Shown: piece after piece, positions 13,911-43,695 of the stretch
How the letters are laid out: every line of letters begins with the position of its first letter
Position numbering within the stretch: position 1 is the stretch's first letter
Assembly (NCBI GenBank): GCA_964019335.1
Contig: OZ025684.1
Coordinates: 434,001 to 498,000, forward strand
Reading direction: 5' to 3'
Source: Diplonema japonicum
Taxonomy: Eukaryota; Protista; Euglenozoa: Diplonemea
Length of the DNA: 64,000 nt
Translations under genes and position numbers: made by a program
The notes under the pieces: model-generated
What the model was told of the DNA's origin: nothing
The model's database searches: none
Seen by the model: only the letters and a program-made list of their open reading frames with translations

Positions 13911-14245
13911 ATAAAAAAATAATATTTAAAAAAAAGCGCGGAGGCGGGGGGAGGGTAAAAAAGCATTATTCCCCTTCCGTCACGCTATATACCATACGTA
14001 GGTCTTCGCCGCGCAAGCATGCGTTTTTCCTGTTTCCATCTTCCCTCTAGTTGCTTTGCACATTCTTGGGTGTTATTCATCCCAAGTTCCTTCTTTGCAC
14101 TGCTAGGCATGCACAGGCGAATCAAGTAGTGTATGGGAGATGCATGAGCAGAAGGGGGGGGGGGGGGGGGGAAGAAGAAAAAAAGGAGATTACCTTGAAT
14201 CTCGCCCGTGAGATTACTCGACGAGTTGAGGGGCTCTGGTGTGCT

Positions 14246-14290
<45 letters not shown>

Positions 14291-14449
14291 CGCGGGTTTG
14301 GGATAATAATCCCAAAAAGAAACTCCAATGTGCCCAGTACAATGTGCCCATTCATGAGGCGGGGGAGGTTTAAACTTTTTACGTGCAACCGCCAGAAATA
14401 GAAATAAAAGCTAGCGTTGGTTGCATGATGGTTTAAAAAAAAAAAAAAA

Positions 14450-14772
14450 TGGGGCTTTAATTGCACTAGGTGGCGTTAAGCGTGCAATGAAGCACGAACT
14501 ACCTACTTGATTACAGGGGGCGCTCCTCGGCCGAGCAGTAGCTTCTTCTGCGTTCCGCGTCGTGTCCTTAATGCGTGCGGTGTGCTCAACCCTAGCCGGG
14601 GCGTCCCGGGTAACCAAGATTCTGCGCTCGTGCAGTTTGCTGCCTGTTCGTCACCCTGAGCATCTGCGTTACGTTCTTCCACTCGGGCGCTACCGGTGAT
14701 GACCGACGAGGAGGTCAACAGCGAACAACACATCTGATGTACTTCTTATATTTCCATGTTATCCCCACCACC
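14450..14772 (-). mobile_element. Ribozyme-headed non-coding retroposon (SINE-like), copy 1
   Basis: Near-identical to 43370-43695. Similarity starts exactly at GGTGGTG and ends at gcccca followed by poly(T). Confidence 0.88.
14639..14772 (-). ncRNA. HDV-like self-cleaving ribozyme
   Basis: P1 GGUGGUG/CAUCACC; J1/2 hairpin GGAUAACAU/GUGUUGUUC; P2 GCUGUUG/CAG(G)CAGC; P3 ACC/GGU; L3 UCCUCGUC; P1.1 CC/GG; P4 CGCCCGAGU/GCUC(A)GGGUG; J4/2 ACGAA. Confidence 0.85.
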
Positions 14773-14810
14773 CAATAAAGTACAGAAACTGTAGCTTTAG
14801 AATCGTTGGT
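14773..14810 (-). ncRNA. Orphan, probably retro-copied, spliced-leader exon (diplonemid type)
   Basis: ACCAACGATTCTAAAGCTACAGTTTCTGTACTTTATTG (38 nt). It has the CAGTTTCTGTACTTTATTG end conserved in kinetoplastid/diplonemid leaders and is not followed by the SL intron. Confidence 0.9.
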
Positions 14811-15663
14811 AAAAAAAGAAGAAAAAAAAATCAACGTGAATAAAAAGAAAAAAGAAAAGCAGAAAAAAAAAAGAACGAAAACCCCGTGCGTACAAAGACT
14901 TTCCTTTCGCAAGAAACCTGACGCAATTCTTTTTTCCCTCGGGCGGGAGGGCGTAAAAACTTTTTTTTAAGCACTTGTTGTAAATTTGCTTCGTCACCAA
15001 ACATGAAAATATTCACGAGAACAGAATACCAACACTTTTTACAGATTCGTGCTGCTGGGCTGAATTACAGGACAGAAGCGGTGCCAGGAACACCGTCCTC
15101 CTGCCATCGCAGGTCCTGGGCACCTTTCTTTTTTTTTTTTTTACGACAAAATTAAGAGATTCAAAAAGAAAAACGTTTTTAACAGAAGAGAATAATAAAA
15201 AAAAAATAAAAAAAATAAAAAAAAAGGTAGGGAGAAAACAACACACTGCGCAGTCATCTATAGTCTGCCTTGTTTCATGGCGCTGATCAGAACACCAAAG
15301 CCCGAACTTCCATGCCAACCATTGTAACTCTAATTCTTCTTGTTCCCATTTAAATCAACACACGCTGCCCAAAGGAATTCTTAACATCTAGGGTAAACAC
15401 CTTGTCAAGGGCAAGTACGGCAAAAAGGCAGACACCCTGCGCAGTTGTTTTGAAGTAAAGAAAACTGCGAAACGAAGAAGGGATTAAACCCATACACATC
15501 ATAGATAACATAGAGAATATAGAAAGGTTGAAGAAAGAGGGAAAGAGGGAAAGGGAGATAAAAATGCTACACGCGTAGCATAATAACAGATAAAAGAATT
15601 AATTGAAATGGGCAGAACCTGACCAAATTCACTCTGAACAGCTTGTGTGTATCCAGCTAATAA

Positions 15664-18207
15664 CTATGGTCCGCTGCTCATCCGCCGCAAGTTGGCCTCC
15701 CTCACGAAGGACGGAGAGAGAGGGGACACCGGATCGTTCCGTACTTTTGGAGACTGCAGAAGGTAGTCACCCTTCCTCAGCCAGCCCAGGGGTGTGGGGG
15801 GTGCCTTGTCGTCCCTTCGGAAGCACAGCGGTACAGGAAGAGAGAGGAGCCCTTGCATGGCCTCGACGGTGCCGGCAATGGAGGGGTCGGTGGAGGCAAG
15901 GCGTTGCAGCTCTGCGGTGTCCCCAGCAGCGTAGGCGTCGTGGTAGGAAGCGGACCAGGTCTCGGGGACTGCCCCGTCGAAGATCCCCCACACCCCTTGC
16001 AGGAGGGCGAAGGTCTCCAGGTTCAGTTGGTATATCCTCACCTTCGTTGTCCCCTCCCCCCAGAAGGCCACCTCCCGAAGGTGGGGGAGGAGCACCGGTT
16101 CCCGAACAGCCTCTTCGGTGTCCCCAGCCATCAAGCAGAACACCCCGAGGAGGCTCGCCCCGTCCGCCAGCGTCTTGCTCACGTCGATTGCCCGCCCGAT
16201 CACAGCCACGAAACGCTGCTTCGCCGTCCCCACCATCCCGTGCAAAATTGCCCCGCGGTGCACCCCGACAGTCACCATCCCGTCCCACTGCGTCCCCTCC
16301 AGTGCCCCCTTCACGTGCGCCACATACTTCCCACTCTGGTACGCGTGCTGGGTGCACCCTTTGCTCAGGTTCCACCCTCCGATCACGTAGTCCCCGCAGA
16401 AGGTCACCACAAGCCCATCGTGCCGGTTCATCGCATCCAACACAGTTGTCACTACCGACGCCACCGCGTCCGCAGCCGCAGGGAACTCCTTCAAACGGGA
16501 GAAGCTCACCCGCGTCGTCACAATCGTCCCAGAGGCCGAGGACAGCTTGTTCCGTGTCATGCTCTTCATGAAGGTGGTGGTCGTCGGGGTCGCCAGCTGC
16601 TTTGACATCGTAGCCGATGACGCAGATCCCGAACGCAGGAGCTTCTTCCGTCCCCTCACCGTTTTCTCGATCTCCTGCTCCCTCTCCCGCAGCTTCATCG
16701 GAAGGAGGAGCTGCACTTGAACCCGCCCCATCCCCTTCATCTCCTGCTCTCCGATGTCCATCACAAAAGGGGACCCGACAGCCACCATGTCCCCCAGCTG
16801 CTCCAACACTTCATCAGTCACACCGACACCACCCCCGACAGCTGCCGCCTCCACCCGAGCTGCCTTGTTCACCGTCGGTCCCATGTAGTCCGCCCGCGAG
16901 GTCACAGGGTTGATCTCCAGCCGTGCGTGGCCAGTGTGGACCCCGATCCGGACACGAAGCCCCCGCCAACACCCGCCGCCCCCTACCCTGCAGAGCGGGT
17001 GTTCCAAAAGAGAAACAGGCCAATTCTGGACCACGAGCTTCTGCTGCACCTCCAAGGCGAACCGCACCCCCTCCACCGCAGTGTCAAAGGCCACCATGAA
17101 GGCATCCCCGATCGTCTTCACCTCGTACCCGTTGTGCTTGTAGATCAGCTCCCGCATCACAGCGTTGTGCAGATCCATCGCAACCCGCATCGCAGTCGTG
17201 TGCCTCTCCCAAATATCTGTCGATGACTGGATGTCTGTGAAGACGATCGTCACAGAAGCGTCCATCGTGTCGCCCGTGCTGATCCCGGGGGGGTTCCCTC
17301 GTGTGGGGAACGCTGAGGTTGCCTCATCCTCCACGAAGAGGGCGTCGGGGAGGTAGGGACGGTACAGGCGGAGGTTCCCGATCAGAGATTCAAACGCGCT
17401 CCTCAGAGAAGAGCTGCTTGCCCTTCCCAAGTGGTAGGCTGCCGTGTCCAGGTCGAACTTCACAAGAGCGTCAGCAACAAGATTTGCCATCTCCACGTCA
17501 TCCAGGCTCTTCTGCTGCTCCTTCCGCATCCCCATTGCGAACCTCTTCGTCAGCACGTAGTCGGTGACAAAGATCAAAACCCGCATCAACATCACAGTGT
17601 ACATCCACCTGGTGCCCTTCGCCGCTTCAGGGGAATGCTCCCGTTCAGGGATGAGGTCGTAGATACCCAACCTGTACGCCTCCTCGATAGTCTTAACGAC
17701 TAGGTACACCGCAACAAAGCCACAGGCGAAGGTTGCTATGTTGTTCCTGCACCCAGTGAGGAGCAGCATGTCCATCATGATGACGGCACCTGTCCAGGAG
17801 TCGAAAGCACCGAAGTAGAGCAAGTCGTCGGCGATGAACAGTGTGAAGCCGATAGCGATGATGGTCACTTCTGCGACCCATACAGGAGCCCGGCGGGTCT
17901 TTAGAATGTTAGCAAGGAAGCAAAAGAGGATCAGCACACGGACTCCGGAGTTGAACAGGCCGTCGAAAACAGACACGATCATGGTGTTGGCGATGAAAAG
18001 GATGGTGTAAATAACGGCCAGGAAGATGCCCAACGGGAAGAGGAGCGACTTCCTGACACGCTCGTCAGTATCATCGTCGTCCCTGTACACGAGGGACATC
18101 AGCCGTGCGAAGCACCCGTTGTCATTGCTGTCCGGTAGTGTTGGTATGTCCTCCACAGGGTCTTCGAAAGGATCCTCAAAGTACAGGCTCGTGGCCCTGG
18201 AGGACAT
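15664..18207 (-). CDS. Multi-pass membrane class III adenylate cyclase, paralog 2 (847 aa)
   Basis: Same catalytic motifs; cytosolic part essentially identical to paralogs 1 and 3. Confidence 0.93.
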   Translation of the reverse strand: MSSRATSLYFEDPFEDPVEDIPTLPDSNDNGCFARLMSLVYRDDDDTDERVRKSLLFPLGIFLAVIYTILFIANTMIVSVFDGLFNSGVRVLILFCFLANILKTRRAPVWVAEVTIIAIGFTLFIADDLLYFGAFDSWTGAVIMMDMLLLTGCRNNIATFACGFVAVYLVVKTIEEAYRLGIYDLIPEREHSPEAAKGTRWMYTVMLMRVLIFVTDYVLTKRFAMGMRKEQQKSLDDVEMANLVADALVKFDLDTAAYHLGRASSSSLRSAFESLIGNLRLYRPYLPDALFVEDEATSAFPTRGNPPGISTGDTMDASVTIVFTDIQSSTDIWERHTTAMRVAMDLHNAVMRELIYKHNGYEVKTIGDAFMVAFDTAVEGVRFALEVQQKLVVQNWPVSLLEHPLCRVGGGGCWRGLRVRIGVHTGHARLEINPVTSRADYMGPTVNKAARVEAAAVGGGVGVTDEVLEQLGDMVAVGSPFVMDIGEQEMKGMGRVQVQLLLPMKLREREQEIEKTVRGRKKLLRSGSASSATMSKQLATPTTTTFMKSMTRNKLSSASGTIVTTRVSFSRLKEFPAAADAVASVVTTVLDAMNRHDGLVVTFCGDYVIGGWNLSKGCTQHAYQSGKYVAHVKGALEGTQWDGMVTVGVHRGAILHGMVGTAKQRFVAVIGRAIDVSKTLADGASLLGVFCLMAGDTEEAVREPVLLPHLREVAFWGEGTTKVRIYQLNLETFALLQGVWGIFDGAVPETWSASYHDAYAAGDTAELQRLASTDPSIAGTVEAMQGLLSLPVPLCFRRDDKAPPTPLGWLRKGDYLLQSPKVRNDPVSPLSPSFVREANLRRMSSGP

Positions 18208-21185: not shown

Positions 21186-23729
21186 CTATGGTCCGCTGCT
21201 CATCCGCCGCAAGTTGGCCTCCCTCACGAAGGACGGAGAGAGAGGGGACACCGGATCGTTCCGTACTTTTGGAGACTGCAGAAGGTAGTCACCCTTCCTC
21301 AGCCAGCCCAGGGGTGTGGGGGGTGCCTTGTCGTCCCTTCGGAAGCACAGCGGTACAGGAAGAGAGAGGAGCCCTTGCATGGCCTCGACGATGCCGGCAA
21401 TGGAGGGGTCGGTGGAGGCAAGGCGTTGCAGCTCTGCGGTGTCCCCAGCAGCGTAGGCGTCGTGGTAGGAAGCGGACCAGGTCTCGGGGACTGCCCCGTC
21501 GAAGATCCCCCACACCCCTTGCAGGAGGGCGAAGGTCTCCAGGTTCAGTTGGTATATCCTCACCTTCGTTGTCCCCTCCCCCCAGAAGGCCACCTCCCGA
21601 AGGTGGGGGAGGAGCACCGGTTCCCGAACAGCCTCTTCGGTGTCCCCAGCCATCAAGCAGAACACCCCGAGGAGGCTCGCCCCGTCCGCCAGCGTCTTGC
21701 TCACGTCGATTGCCCGCCCGATCACAGCCACGAAACGCTGCTTCGCCGTCCCCACCATCCCGTGCAAAATTGCCCCGCGGTGCACCCCGACAGTCACCAT
21801 CCCGTCCCACTGCGTCCCCTCCAGTGCCCCCTTCACGTGCGCCACATACTTCCCACTCTGGTACGCGTGCTGGGTGCACCCTTTGCTCAGGTTCCACCCT
21901 CCGATCACGTAGTCCCCGCAGAAGGTCACCACAAGCCCATCGTGCCGGTTCATCGCATCCAACACAGTTGTCACTACCGACGCCACCGCGTCCGCAGCCG
22001 CAGGGAACTCCTTCAAACGGGAGAAGCTCACCCGCGTCGTCACAATCGTCCCAGAGGCCGAGGACAGCTTGTTCCGTGTCATGCTCTTCATGAAGGTGGT
22101 GGTCGTCGGGGTCGCCAGCTGCTTTGACATCGTAGCCGATGACGCAGATCCCGAACGCAGGAGCTTCTTCCGTCCCCTCACCGTTTTCTCGATCTCCTGC
22201 TCCCTCTCCCGCAGCTTCATCGGAAGGAGGAGCTGCACTTGAACCCGCCCCATCCCCTTCATCTCCTGCTCTCCGATGTCCATCACAAAAGGGGACCCGA
22301 CAGCCACCATGTCCCCCAGCTGCTCCAACACTTCATCAGTCACACCGACACCACCCCCGACAGCTGCCGCCTCCACCCGAGCTGCCTTGTTCACCGTCGG
22401 TCCCATGTAGTCCGCCCGCGAGGTCACAGGGTTGATCTCCAGCCGTGCGTGGCCAGTGTGGACCCCGATCCGGACACGAAGCCCCCGCCAACACCCGCCG
22501 CCCCCTACCCTGCAGAGCGGGTGTTCCAAAAGAGAAACAGGCCAATTCTGGACCACGAGCTTCTGCTGCACCTCCAAGGCGAACCGCACCCCCTCCACCG
22601 CAGTGTCAAAGGCCACCATGAAGGCATCCCCGATCGTCTTCACCTCGTACCCGTTGTGCTTGTAGATCAGCTCCCGCATCACAGCGTTGTGCAGATCCAT
22701 CGCAACCCGCATCGCAGTCGTGTGCCTCTCCCAAATATCTGTCGATGACTGGATGTCTGTGAAGACGATCGTCACAGAAGCGTCCATCGTGTCGCCCGTG
22801 CTGATCCCGGGGGGGTTCCCTCGTGTGGGGAACGCTGAGGTTGCCTCATCCTCCACGAAGAGGGCGTCGGGGAGGTAGGGACGGTACAGGCGGAGGTTCC
22901 CGATCAGAGATTCAAACGCGCTCCTCAGAGAAGAGCTGCTTGCCCTTCCCAAGTGGTAGGCTGCCGTGTCCAGGTCGAACTTCACAAGAGCGTCAGCAAC
23001 AAGATTTGCCATCTCCACGTCATCCAGGCTCTTCTGCTGCTCCTTCCGCATCCCCATTGCGAACCGCTTCGTCAACACGTAGTCGGCATTGAAGACTATC
23101 ACGCGCATCAACATCACAGTGATCATCCACCTGGTGCCTCTCGCCTCATTAGGGGTATACTCACCTTTAGGAAAGAGGTCGTAGATACCCATCCTGTACG
23201 CCTCTTCAACCGTTTTCACCATTAAGTACAACGAAATGAAGACGCAGGTACAGGTTGCTGTGGTTTTCCTGCACCCAGTGAGGAGCAGTATGTCCATCGC
23301 GATGACGGCACCTGTGTACGAGTCGAAGACACCGAAGTAGAGCAAGTCGTCGGCGATGAACAGTGTGAAGCCCATTGCGAGGACGGTCGCTTCTGCGACC
23401 CATACAGGGATACGGCGGGTCTTCAAAGTGTAAGCAAGGAAGCTGTAGAGTATCGAAGTGCGGACACCTGAGTTGAAGATGGACTTCATTACAGATTGTG
23501 TAAGGAGACTCGAAACAAAAAACCCGGTGTAGATAACGGCCAGCATGATGCACAGAGGGAAGAGGAGCGACTTCCTGACACGCTCGTCAGTATCATCGTC
23601 GTCCCTGTACACGAGGGACATCAGCCGTGCGAAGCACCCGTTGTCATTGCTGTCCGGTAGTGTTGGTATGTCCTCCACAGGGTCTTCGAAAGGATCCTCA
23701 AAGTACAGGCTCGTGGCCCTGGAGGACAT
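21186..23729 (-). CDS. Multi-pass membrane class III adenylate cyclase, paralog 3 (847 aa)
   Basis: Same motifs; N-terminal ~58 aa identical and cytosolic region near-identical to paralog 2. Confidence 0.93.
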   Translation of the reverse strand: MSSRATSLYFEDPFEDPVEDIPTLPDSNDNGCFARLMSLVYRDDDDTDERVRKSLLFPLCIMLAVIYTGFFVSSLLTQSVMKSIFNSGVRTSILYSFLAYTLKTRRIPVWVAEATVLAMGFTLFIADDLLYFGVFDSYTGAVIAMDILLLTGCRKTTATCTCVFISLYLMVKTVEEAYRMGIYDLFPKGEYTPNEARGTRWMITVMLMRVIVFNADYVLTKRFAMGMRKEQQKSLDDVEMANLVADALVKFDLDTAAYHLGRASSSSLRSAFESLIGNLRLYRPYLPDALFVEDEATSAFPTRGNPPGISTGDTMDASVTIVFTDIQSSTDIWERHTTAMRVAMDLHNAVMRELIYKHNGYEVKTIGDAFMVAFDTAVEGVRFALEVQQKLVVQNWPVSLLEHPLCRVGGGGCWRGLRVRIGVHTGHARLEINPVTSRADYMGPTVNKAARVEAAAVGGGVGVTDEVLEQLGDMVAVGSPFVMDIGEQEMKGMGRVQVQLLLPMKLREREQEIEKTVRGRKKLLRSGSASSATMSKQLATPTTTTFMKSMTRNKLSSASGTIVTTRVSFSRLKEFPAAADAVASVVTTVLDAMNRHDGLVVTFCGDYVIGGWNLSKGCTQHAYQSGKYVAHVKGALEGTQWDGMVTVGVHRGAILHGMVGTAKQRFVAVIGRAIDVSKTLADGASLLGVFCLMAGDTEEAVREPVLLPHLREVAFWGEGTTKVRIYQLNLETFALLQGVWGIFDGAVPETWSASYHDAYAAGDTAELQRLASTDPSIAGIVEAMQGLLSLPVPLCFRRDDKAPPTPLGWLRKGDYLLQSPKVRNDPVSPLSPSFVREANLRRMSSGP

Positions 23730-43369: not shown

Positions 43370-43372
<3 letters not shown>

Positions 43373-43695
43373 GGCTTTGATTGCAACACTAGGTGGCGTT
43401 AAGCGTGCAATGAAGCACGAACTACCTACTTGATTACAGGGGGCGCTCCTCGGCCGAGCAGTAGCTTCTTCTGCGTTCCGCGTCGTGTCCATAATGCGTG
43501 CGGTGTGCTCAACCCTAGCCGGGGCGTCCCGGGTAACCAAGATTCTGTGCTCGTGCAGTCTGCTGCCTGTTCGTCACCCTGAGCATCTGCGTTACGTTCT
43601 TCCACTCGGGCGCTACCGGTGATGACCGACGAGGAGGTCAACAGCGAACAACACATCTGATGTACTTCTTATATTTTCATGTTATCCCCACCACC
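43370..43695 (-). mobile_element. Ribozyme-headed non-coding retroposon, copy 2 (no spliced leader)
   Basis: Near-identical to 14450-14772. Long T tail on the sense strand; 5' flank TTTTTTTA. Confidence 0.88.
43562..43695 (-). ncRNA. HDV-like self-cleaving ribozyme, copy 2
   Basis: All helices and core nucleotides identical to 14639-14772; the one difference seen lies in the J1/2 loop. Confidence 0.85.

Follow-up and report, generated by a model that had tools for sequence, protein, structure and literature searches.

In the genome of the marine protist Diplonema japonicum, a SINE-like non-coding element headed by an HDV-like ribozyme fold carries the spliced leader (SL) of its host, without the SL intron, fused base-exactly to its first nucleotide. 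With a probability of about 0.78, this locus is a retrotransposed copy of an element RNA to which the SL had been trans-spliced and which had not cleaved itself. According to this reading, the copy is a DNA fossil of a trans-spliced element RNA that escaped self-cleavage, and it is one of about a dozen. The reading is built on junctions, flanks, target-site duplications (TSDs), copy counts and the fit to the ribozyme fold, all of which are demonstrated in the genomic DNA. Ribozyme-headed retroposons and SL-bearing retrocopies are each known already; new are their conjunction and the pattern in which the leader is kept.

The leader/element junction

The window, i.e. the whole stretch of 64,000 nucleotides analysed (contig OZ025684.1, positions 434,001 to 498,000), contains a leader-bearing and a leaderless copy of the element. 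The features of the two loci are as follows, in window coordinates.

14811..14817, minus strand: T7 run adjoining the 5' end of the leader; it forms the upstream half of the T-rich target and is the probable TSD
14773..14810, minus strand: SL exon nucleotides 2-39 (38 nt), with the same sequence as the exon in the SL RNA genes of L029 and L011
14772, minus strand: G1 of the element, adjoining the leader base-exactly
14639..14772, minus strand: HDV-like ribozyme fold starting from G1 (14772), with all listed pairs checking out and a descriptor match
14450..14772, minus strand: whole SINE-like non-coding element, 323 nt, in a family of typically 326 nt
14435..14449, minus strand: T15 run at the 3' end of the element, downstream half of the T-rich target (TSD)
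43370..43695, minus strand: copy 2 of the element, leaderless, with the 5' flank TTTTTTTA directly before GGTGGTGG

On the minus strand, the locus reads ...ttcttcTTTTTTT / ACCAACGATTCTAAAGCTACAGTTTCTGTACTTTATTG / GGTGGTGGGGATAAC..., corresponding to T-run, leader and element head, and the bases 5' of the leader are ...ttcttc-T7. The base-exact fusion of a T-run, a 38-nt leader and G1, which had been pointed out in an earlier note on this DNA, was read at 14817-14811, 14810-14773 and 14772, respectively; copy 2, read at 43695-43370, has TTTTTTTA before GGTGGTGG in the place of the leader, as the same note had stated. In copy 2, the A of the flank and G1 of the element form an AG acceptor behind a polypyrimidine tract. 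The T7 and T15 runs probably play the role of the TSD at the window locus, and a short U-tail may have contributed to the 3' T15 run. The 19-nt tail of the SL has one exact match in the window and none in 100 shuffles, and the 23-nt head of the element has no match in 100 shuffles either.

The SL RNA gene is organized in tandem units of about 352 bp in L029 and is present as one unit in L011. It reads ...GGGAGGTTA / ACCAACG...TTATTG / GTACCCAATCTGATCC..., with a conserved upstream part and an intron that ends in a T-run. Comparison with these genes bore out that the SL intron is absent from the window locus and that only the first A of the 39-nt leader is missing, as the earlier note had stated. 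A BLASTN comparison of window positions 14001-15600 with L011 and L029 resulted in a single non-homopolymer match of 39 nt, consisting of the 38-nt exon and one G that is both G1 of the element and the first base of the intron; neither promoter-side nor intron homology to the SL RNA gene was found around the window leader in this comparison. Homology of the upstream flank to the SL RNA gene repeat, which the earlier note had named as a sign of an SLACS/CRE-type insertion, was not found; the match ends with the exon. The genome paper for D. papillatum reports an SL exon of 39 bp and leaves leader-headed repeats unmentioned (PMC10161547). No paper with the leader sequence was found in the literature search, and no SL family in Rfam matched the window locus at the gathering score or at E<=10.

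In Logan contigs from three studies (X1, X4, X5), whose library type is not stated and which cannot display RNA 5' ends, the unique 5' flank continues from 15117 to 14788-14790, which is 21-23 nt into the leader and below the threshold of 31 letters set for bridging, because the graph branches in the repeat. The join between flank and leader is thus present in independent data, and these contigs end before G1. A 63-nt contig from X4 crosses an SL/element junction with one gap, corresponding to the form with one G fewer. A search for an empty allelic or paralogous site with the window 5' flank returned the flank itself and low-complexity matches only.

All ORFs of at least 200 aa in the window that do not overlap a longer minus-strand ORF are encoded on the minus strand, like both copies of the element. 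The element therefore appears to lie in a transcription unit, in the same orientation as its neighbours, and to be transcribed in sense. Two minus-strand ORFs of equal length (847 aa; 15664-18207 and 21186-23729) lie 5.5 kb apart and are probably a tandem gene duplication. On the same strand, the element is followed, at a distance of 150-290 nt, by an A-run of about 40 nt (14240-14290) and a C-run of about 20 nt (14150-14185); a long A-run is likewise found about 100 nt behind copy 2.

The element family and its ribozyme fold

The 323-nt element gave 1412 first-look candidates in the genome, and the 41 matches that were scored have 94-100% identity, in most cases 98-99%. The exact 15-nt head of the element occurs 717 times. 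Copies are 323-326 nt long and non-coding, about 99% of them start at G1, and they end with ...AAAGCCCCA, followed by a T-rich run of variable length in every copy examined. Dispersed high copy number and TSDs (in L070, L074 and L104) are found as in non-LTR SINE-like retroposons, and the A-rich 3' tail expected of such retroposons is absent, the T-run following the 3' end. It is proposed that the element is a high-copy, recently active, non-autonomous retroposon that inserts into T-runs. The genome has at least 625 candidate RVT_1 domains, of which 150 loci were listed individually, and many of them lie in open frames of 1430-2036 aa. Metagenome scans with the SL/element junction and with the ribozyme core, conducted separately, gave 0 matches each.

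About 11% of the exact element heads are located in tandem arrays. In L135-L137 (e.g. L137:3381-4740), tandem arrays of older element-like units were observed. Each unit starts with GGTGGTGGGG, preceded by ...ATATATCATTCA or ...TTCCAAA, and CpG-to-TpG/CpA decay is heavy in them. This decay hints at cytosine methylation of repeats. As the copies in these old arrays are CpG-decayed, not selected, their covariation carries no information on the fold.

The first 134 nt of the element fit the nested double pseudoknot of HDV-type ribozymes, with P1, P1.1, P2, P3 and P4 in canonical order from the cleavage-site G1. In element positions, the parts of the fold are as follows.

P1: 1-7/72-78
P2: 51-57/127-134
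P3: 58-60/69-71
P4: 83-122
P1.1: C62,C63/G80,G79
L3: UCCUCGUC
J1/2: hairpin 8-50 (43 nt)
J4/2: C123-G-A-A

The catalytic C is present in J4/2, the sequence C-G-A-A of which is the same in HDV and CPEB3, and the C-rich L3 pairs with the GG after P1. A G1-U wobble closing P1 was not found; G1 pairs with C78. An HDV descriptor with its anchor at G1 is matched by the native sequence and by none of 20,000 dinucleotide shuffles. No curated covariance model in Rfam matched at the gathering score or at E<=10, for which the 43-nt insert in J1/2 may account. Plain MFE folding of the element yields z = +0.9, the pseudoknot fold being outside what MFE captures. Based on this model, the ribozyme is predicted to cleave 5' of G1; the start of about 99% of the copies at this base and the association of a kept leader with G at -1 or a damaged core are indirect evidence for such cleavage. 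Applied behind all 90 sampled SL sites of the genome (see below), the descriptor matched in this SINE family only, apart from one spurious poly(A) match, and the SL/ribozyme conjunction is thus specific to this SINE in the 90-site sample.

Leader-bearing sister copies

The window copy is not unique. About 12 copies of the element bear the SL, each at a different site with different flanks, and SL-headed retroelements are common in the genome. Eight copies have exact SL/element junctions, comprising five with SL+GTGG, in which the element starts at G2 (C1, C2, C13, C24 and C33), and three with SL+GGTGG, in which it starts at G1 (C10, C44 and the window). Variants of the junction are found in L074, L086, L087 (leader+TGGGG) and C4:777086, in the last of which the leader is mutated. 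At least two subfamilies (C319 and T319, with or without G287) include leader-bearing copies.

The TSDs of sister copies lie outside of SL and element, namely TTTCTTT on both sides in L070 and (A)TTTTAT in L074. Because these duplications enclose leader and element together, the leader was part of the inserted cDNA. Accordingly, the family shows what is expected of SL-bearing retrocopies, with the SL exon at the exact 5' end, lacking its intron, inside the TSD and next to flanks unlike the SL gene. Retrotransposition of an SL-capped RNA of the element, as claimed in the earlier note, is supported by the exon-only leader starting from nucleotide 2, the missing SL-gene flank and the TSDs enclosing SL and element.

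Trans-splicing as the probable source of the leader

The standard acceptor for trans-splicing consists of a T-run and a following AG. Among 83 dispersed leaderless flanks, which were counted by eye, the base at -1 is A in 59 (71%), T in 16, G in 7 and C in 1. Genome-wide, 513 copies have [A/C/T]A directly before G1, and 18 have a T-run with A(A)G in this position. Since the element lands in T-runs and G1 is preceded by A in 71% of these flanks, its copies have a polypyrimidine tract with an AG that overlaps the cleavage site. At leaderless 5' junctions, T-run and G1 are separated by one or two additional bases, for the most part A, AA, CA or TA; leader-bearing copies have no extra bases before SL nucleotide 2. 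The extra A or AA could result from non-templated addition at a blunt 5'-OH end or could be templated.

Splicing at A(-1)G1 predicts a leader followed by GTGGTGG, splicing at an AG in front of G1 predicts a leader followed by GGTGGTGG, and both products are found. In the SL+G2 form, the last G of the leader takes the place of G1, which restores the complete ribozyme sequence with U at -1. The SL+GGTGG form of the window requires a source copy with an AG that ends at -1. Of the possible sources of the leader, ordinary trans-splicing at an AG that overlaps the cleavage site has the best support. The earlier note had calculated that splicing at an AG of the copy 2 type leaves one G fewer than observed in the window, and the five exact SL+GTGG copies are precisely this predicted product. 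From among the origins it had listed, trans-splicing at an AG abutting the cleavage site in a source copy fits best, the 18 copies with T-run and AG before G1 providing such sources. Its suggestion of two alternative 5'-maturation routes at one nucleotide holds literally for these rare sources only; in the majority of source copies, splicing cuts one nucleotide further 3' than the ribozyme.

The following sequence of events is proposed. The element of about 326 nt would insert into T-runs, at the window locus co-oriented with the surrounding genes, and new copies would nearly always consist of T-run, A (or AA, CA, TA) and G1, hence carrying an acceptor that overlaps the cleavage site. Read-through transcripts would normally be cut 5' of G1 by the HDV-like ribozyme, with the spliceosome occasionally being ahead of it. 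Splicing at A(-1)G1 would then lead to SL-G2 RNA (GUGGUGG after SL nucleotide 39), in which the last G of the leader recreates G1 with U at -1. Splicing at a flank AG ending at -1 would lead to SL-G1 RNA (GGUGGUGG after SL nucleotide 39), the form of the window, with G at -1. Uncleaved RNAs carrying the SL would be reverse-transcribed by a LINE-encoded enzyme up to SL nucleotide 2 and inserted into another T-run. The stop at this nucleotide would be an effect of a heavily modified cap-proximal first base, for which the kinetoplastid cap4 is a model. As G at -1 slows HDV ribozymes, SL-G1 RNAs would survive preferentially, which would explain why the window copy has an intact ribozyme and still kept its leader. 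In this scheme, we infer the activity of the ribozyme in vivo, the timing of splicing versus cleavage, the acting reverse transcriptase and the cap-proximal stop. The junction would show that element RNA arises from read-through host transcripts, a setting in which a 5' ribozyme is useful.

Alternative origins of the junction

The leader might never have been joined to the element RNA if reverse transcription had switched templates. In this case, the cDNA would have reached the cleaved G1 end and jumped to an RNA ending with the SL exon, namely the free exon that arises as an intermediate in trans-splicing. Within the element family, templates are indeed switched at G1. In L104 (G000:C30, about 484,000, minus strand), a T-rich flank is followed by leader nucleotides 2-39 with the complete intron to ...GAGACACTTTT, by AAA, by the full element and by TTTCTTT...; the intron runs to its terminator T-run, the ribozyme of the element is intact, and all of this lies inside one T-rich TSD. 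Judged by its sequence, L104 looks like a U6/L1-style template switch from the G1 end of the element onto SL RNA. In L004, SL RNA is likewise fused to the head of a LINE, and both loci appear to show cDNA synthesis reaching a free G1 end and jumping. Furthermore, some SL junctions in other families, e.g. L079 and L082, have no upstream AG in the parent, and SL+G1 is commoner than the frequency of AG flanks before G1 predicts.

However, the real chimeras carry the intron and extra A's, whereas 11 of 11 SL-exon junctions have neither. When the absence of extra A's in 11/11 of these junctions is compared with the A at -1 in 71% of ordinary 5' junctions, P is below 1e-6 under the most generous assumption. 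In addition, the free SL exon is a rare and transient species, and a template switch neither predicts five or more SL+G2 junctions that match the A/G1 acceptor exactly nor explains the ribozyme lesions of the SL+G2 copies (see below). As the SL-exon junctions are devoid of intron and extra A's, a junction made in RNA by the spliceosome is favoured, and a template switch is an improbable origin of the window junction. Template switching, which the earlier note had considered as a source of the leader, does take place in the family, as L104 indicates, but its product is different, namely whole unspliced SL RNA plus AAA.

It is quite improbable that the leader was inherited from an SL-bearing master, in which case one early copy would have gained the leader, the DNA-encoded SL would have been propagated, and the window copy would record no fresh trans-splicing. 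The window and C44 copies share the T319 variant, and the SL head looks inherited in the LINE families of this genome. Against this, the SL-bearing copies of the element span at least two subfamilies and have three junction types, and a single SL-bearing master or DNA duplication therefore fails as an explanation; the three SL+G1 copies share no private variant. The transcript of a DNA-encoded SL would also have to begin exactly at nucleotide 2 every time, and it would lose its leader to an intact ribozyme. Re-splicing at AGs within the leader would leave relics; a relic leader behind a new leader, as seen for other families in L017, L026 and L083, is present in 0 of the 8 copies with exact junctions, and only the leader of C13 is 5'-truncated.

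Site-specific insertion beside a pre-existing leader, be it of the SLACS/CRE type in an SL gene or next to a relic, and an assembly chimera are both extremely improbable. The 3' end of the leader, TTTATTG, is T-rich like the targets of the element, but homology to the SL gene stops at the exon, TSDs lie outside of SL and element, about 12 loci have unrelated flanks, and contigs from three studies have the flank joined to 21-23 nt of leader. Insertion of the SLACS/CRE type within an SL RNA gene was rejected, as only the exon matches and neither the promoter region nor the intron is present. Joining of the leader to the cleaved 5'-OH end is the least likely of the three origins put forward in the earlier note, and we know of no enzyme route for it.

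Possible footprint of ribozyme activity

With equal contributions from all source copies, the SL+G1 form should make up about 3% (18/531) of leader-bearing copies. It was observed in 3 of 8 copies with exact junctions (P = 0.002) and in 4 of 11 when variants are included (P = 0.0004), an enrichment that unequal activity of the source copies could alternatively have caused. In HDV ribozymes, G at -1 lowers cleavage about 17-fold relative to U (PMC4114689). At this position, G is found in leader+G1 RNA and U in leader+G2 RNA.

The ribozyme core corresponds to the consensus in all three exact SL+G1 copies, with C10 having a single C>T in P4. The over-representation of SL+G1 with a consensus ribozyme fits the known handicap of G at -1. 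In contrast, lesions are present in all SL+G2 and T6 copies; in four of these copies, they are deletions by which core helices are removed or truncated.

C1: 23-nt deletion of L3/P3'/P1'/P1.1
C2: 1-nt deletion at the base of P4
C3: 7-nt and 13-nt deletions
C13: G66A in L3 plus an insert
C21a: 22-nt deletion of P4
C21b: G1-G4 missing
C24: G85A
C33: G129U in P2

The contrast between SL+G1 and SL+G2/T6 copies is only suggestive (Fisher P 0.05-0.07). The leaderless comparison set for lesions was picked by similarity and is hence biased; the exact 30-nt core is found in only about 41% of the copies with an exact 5' 15-mer, according to two listings cross-matched by eye.

Tentatively, the SL copies may be regarded as the record of a race between ribozyme and trans-spliceosome for nearly the same bond. 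The element may tolerate losing this race, as splicing at A(-1)G1 would recreate an intact ribozyme, which would shed the leader and regenerate 5'-OH RNA. This interpretation is possible, with considerable doubt attached. If it is true, leader retention reports failure of the ribozyme, due to G at -1 or to a damaged core, and the copies provide a natural in vivo read-out of the efficiency of an HDV-type ribozyme and of its nucleotide preference at -1. The dozen leader-bearing copies constitute a small natural experiment in cells, in which junction type can be set against the -1 base and the integrity of the core.

Relation to known retroelements

The element resembles L1Tc and NARTc (and ingi/RIME and SIDER) of trypanosomatids in being a euglenozoan non-LTR retroposon, or a short non-autonomous derivative of one, whose RNA 5' end is set, or in the present case predicted to be set, by an HDV-like ribozyme. 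In the former, this is the ribozyme L1TcRz in the Pr77 hallmark, which frees the element from polycistronic co-transcripts (PMC3185411, PMC4035085). Unlike L1Tc, the present element has no similarity to Pr77, carries a 43-nt insert in J1/2, targets T-runs and lacks a poly(A) tail. Transcripts of L1Tc are described as unspliced, and a leader at the cut site of a genomic L1Tc copy was not encountered in the literature searched.

In dinoflagellates, retrogenes contain relict spliced leaders from reverse-transcribed trans-spliced RNAs, with stacked relics arising via re-splicing (PMC5585692, PMC6050394). Like these, the genomic copies described here begin with the SL, and stacked relics are found in L017, L026 and L083. 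The dinoflagellate retrogenes, however, derive from protein-coding mRNAs with the 22-nt DinoSL, whereas a non-coding, ribozyme-headed SINE with a 39-nt SL is concerned here, in a euglenozoan.

SL exon sequence also abuts retroelements in the case of SLACS, CRE1 and CZAR in the SL RNA genes of trypanosomatids. These elements insert inside SL genes between exon nucleotides 11 and 12 and are flanked by gene sequence. In contrast, exon nucleotides 2-39 lie inside the inserted unit in the present case, and the flanks are unrelated T-runs. Chimeras of U6 and L1 and of other snRNAs and LINEs, which result from template switching, are resembled by L104 and L004 in having a whole small RNA on the 5' end of a retroelement; the window junction differs from such chimeras in consisting of the spliced exon alone, with neither intron nor added A's. 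No paper with a ribozyme head and an SL retrocopy on the same nucleotide was found in the literature searched.

Spliced-leader retrocopies across the genome

The 19-nt tail of the leader occurs 217 times, dispersed across contigs, and 90 distinct sites were sampled. The intron is present at 4 of these 90 sites, 2-3 of which are SL RNA genes and two of which are chimeric retrocopies. At the remaining sampled sites, the leader is fused to other sequences, mostly from nucleotide 2 or 3; most sampled leaders start at ACCAACG (nucleotide 2), and a minority has T/C/G-CCAACG. Fusion partners are the heads of RT-encoding LINEs, with L007, L105 and L004 lying 3.6-3.8 kb upstream of RVT_1 matches, as well as subtelomeric families and tiny units of leader and poly(A). 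The window copy is one case of a general process in which leader-carrying RNAs are reverse-transcribed; throughout this diplonemid genome, spliced-leader RNAs are habitually written back into DNA. For Euglenozoa, such writing back was not found reported in the literature searched, and it is not mentioned in PMC10161547.

In L017, L026 and L083, stacked relic leaders consist of a leader, TTTCTGTACTTTATTG and the body, an order that seems to show re-splicing at the CAG of the leader itself. Stacked or relic leaders, or two leaders 54-84 nt apart, are located on GTCGTT/GTCGTC families in these three loci as well as in L114, L018 and L024; stacking on these families indicates repeated rounds of trans-splicing and reverse transcription.

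Several further arrangements were observed among the sampled sites. L004 (G000:C2:150576, plus strand) contains the SL exon and intron (to ...GGAGAGGAACT) fused via 'agg' to GGCTGGATATTGGG, the head of an RT-encoding LINE, and an RVT_1 match lies 3.8 kb downstream. L100 and L105 have a spliced leader on the same LINE family. L077, L084 and L127 are mini-retrocopies in which the leader is followed by 10-20 nt (…GGGAAGGCT) and then by a long poly(A) run. At contig ends, leader-headed GTCGTT elements adjoin repeats of the (CCCGCAAA)n type in L096 and L125, and many of the 217 leader sites are located within 10 kb of a contig end.
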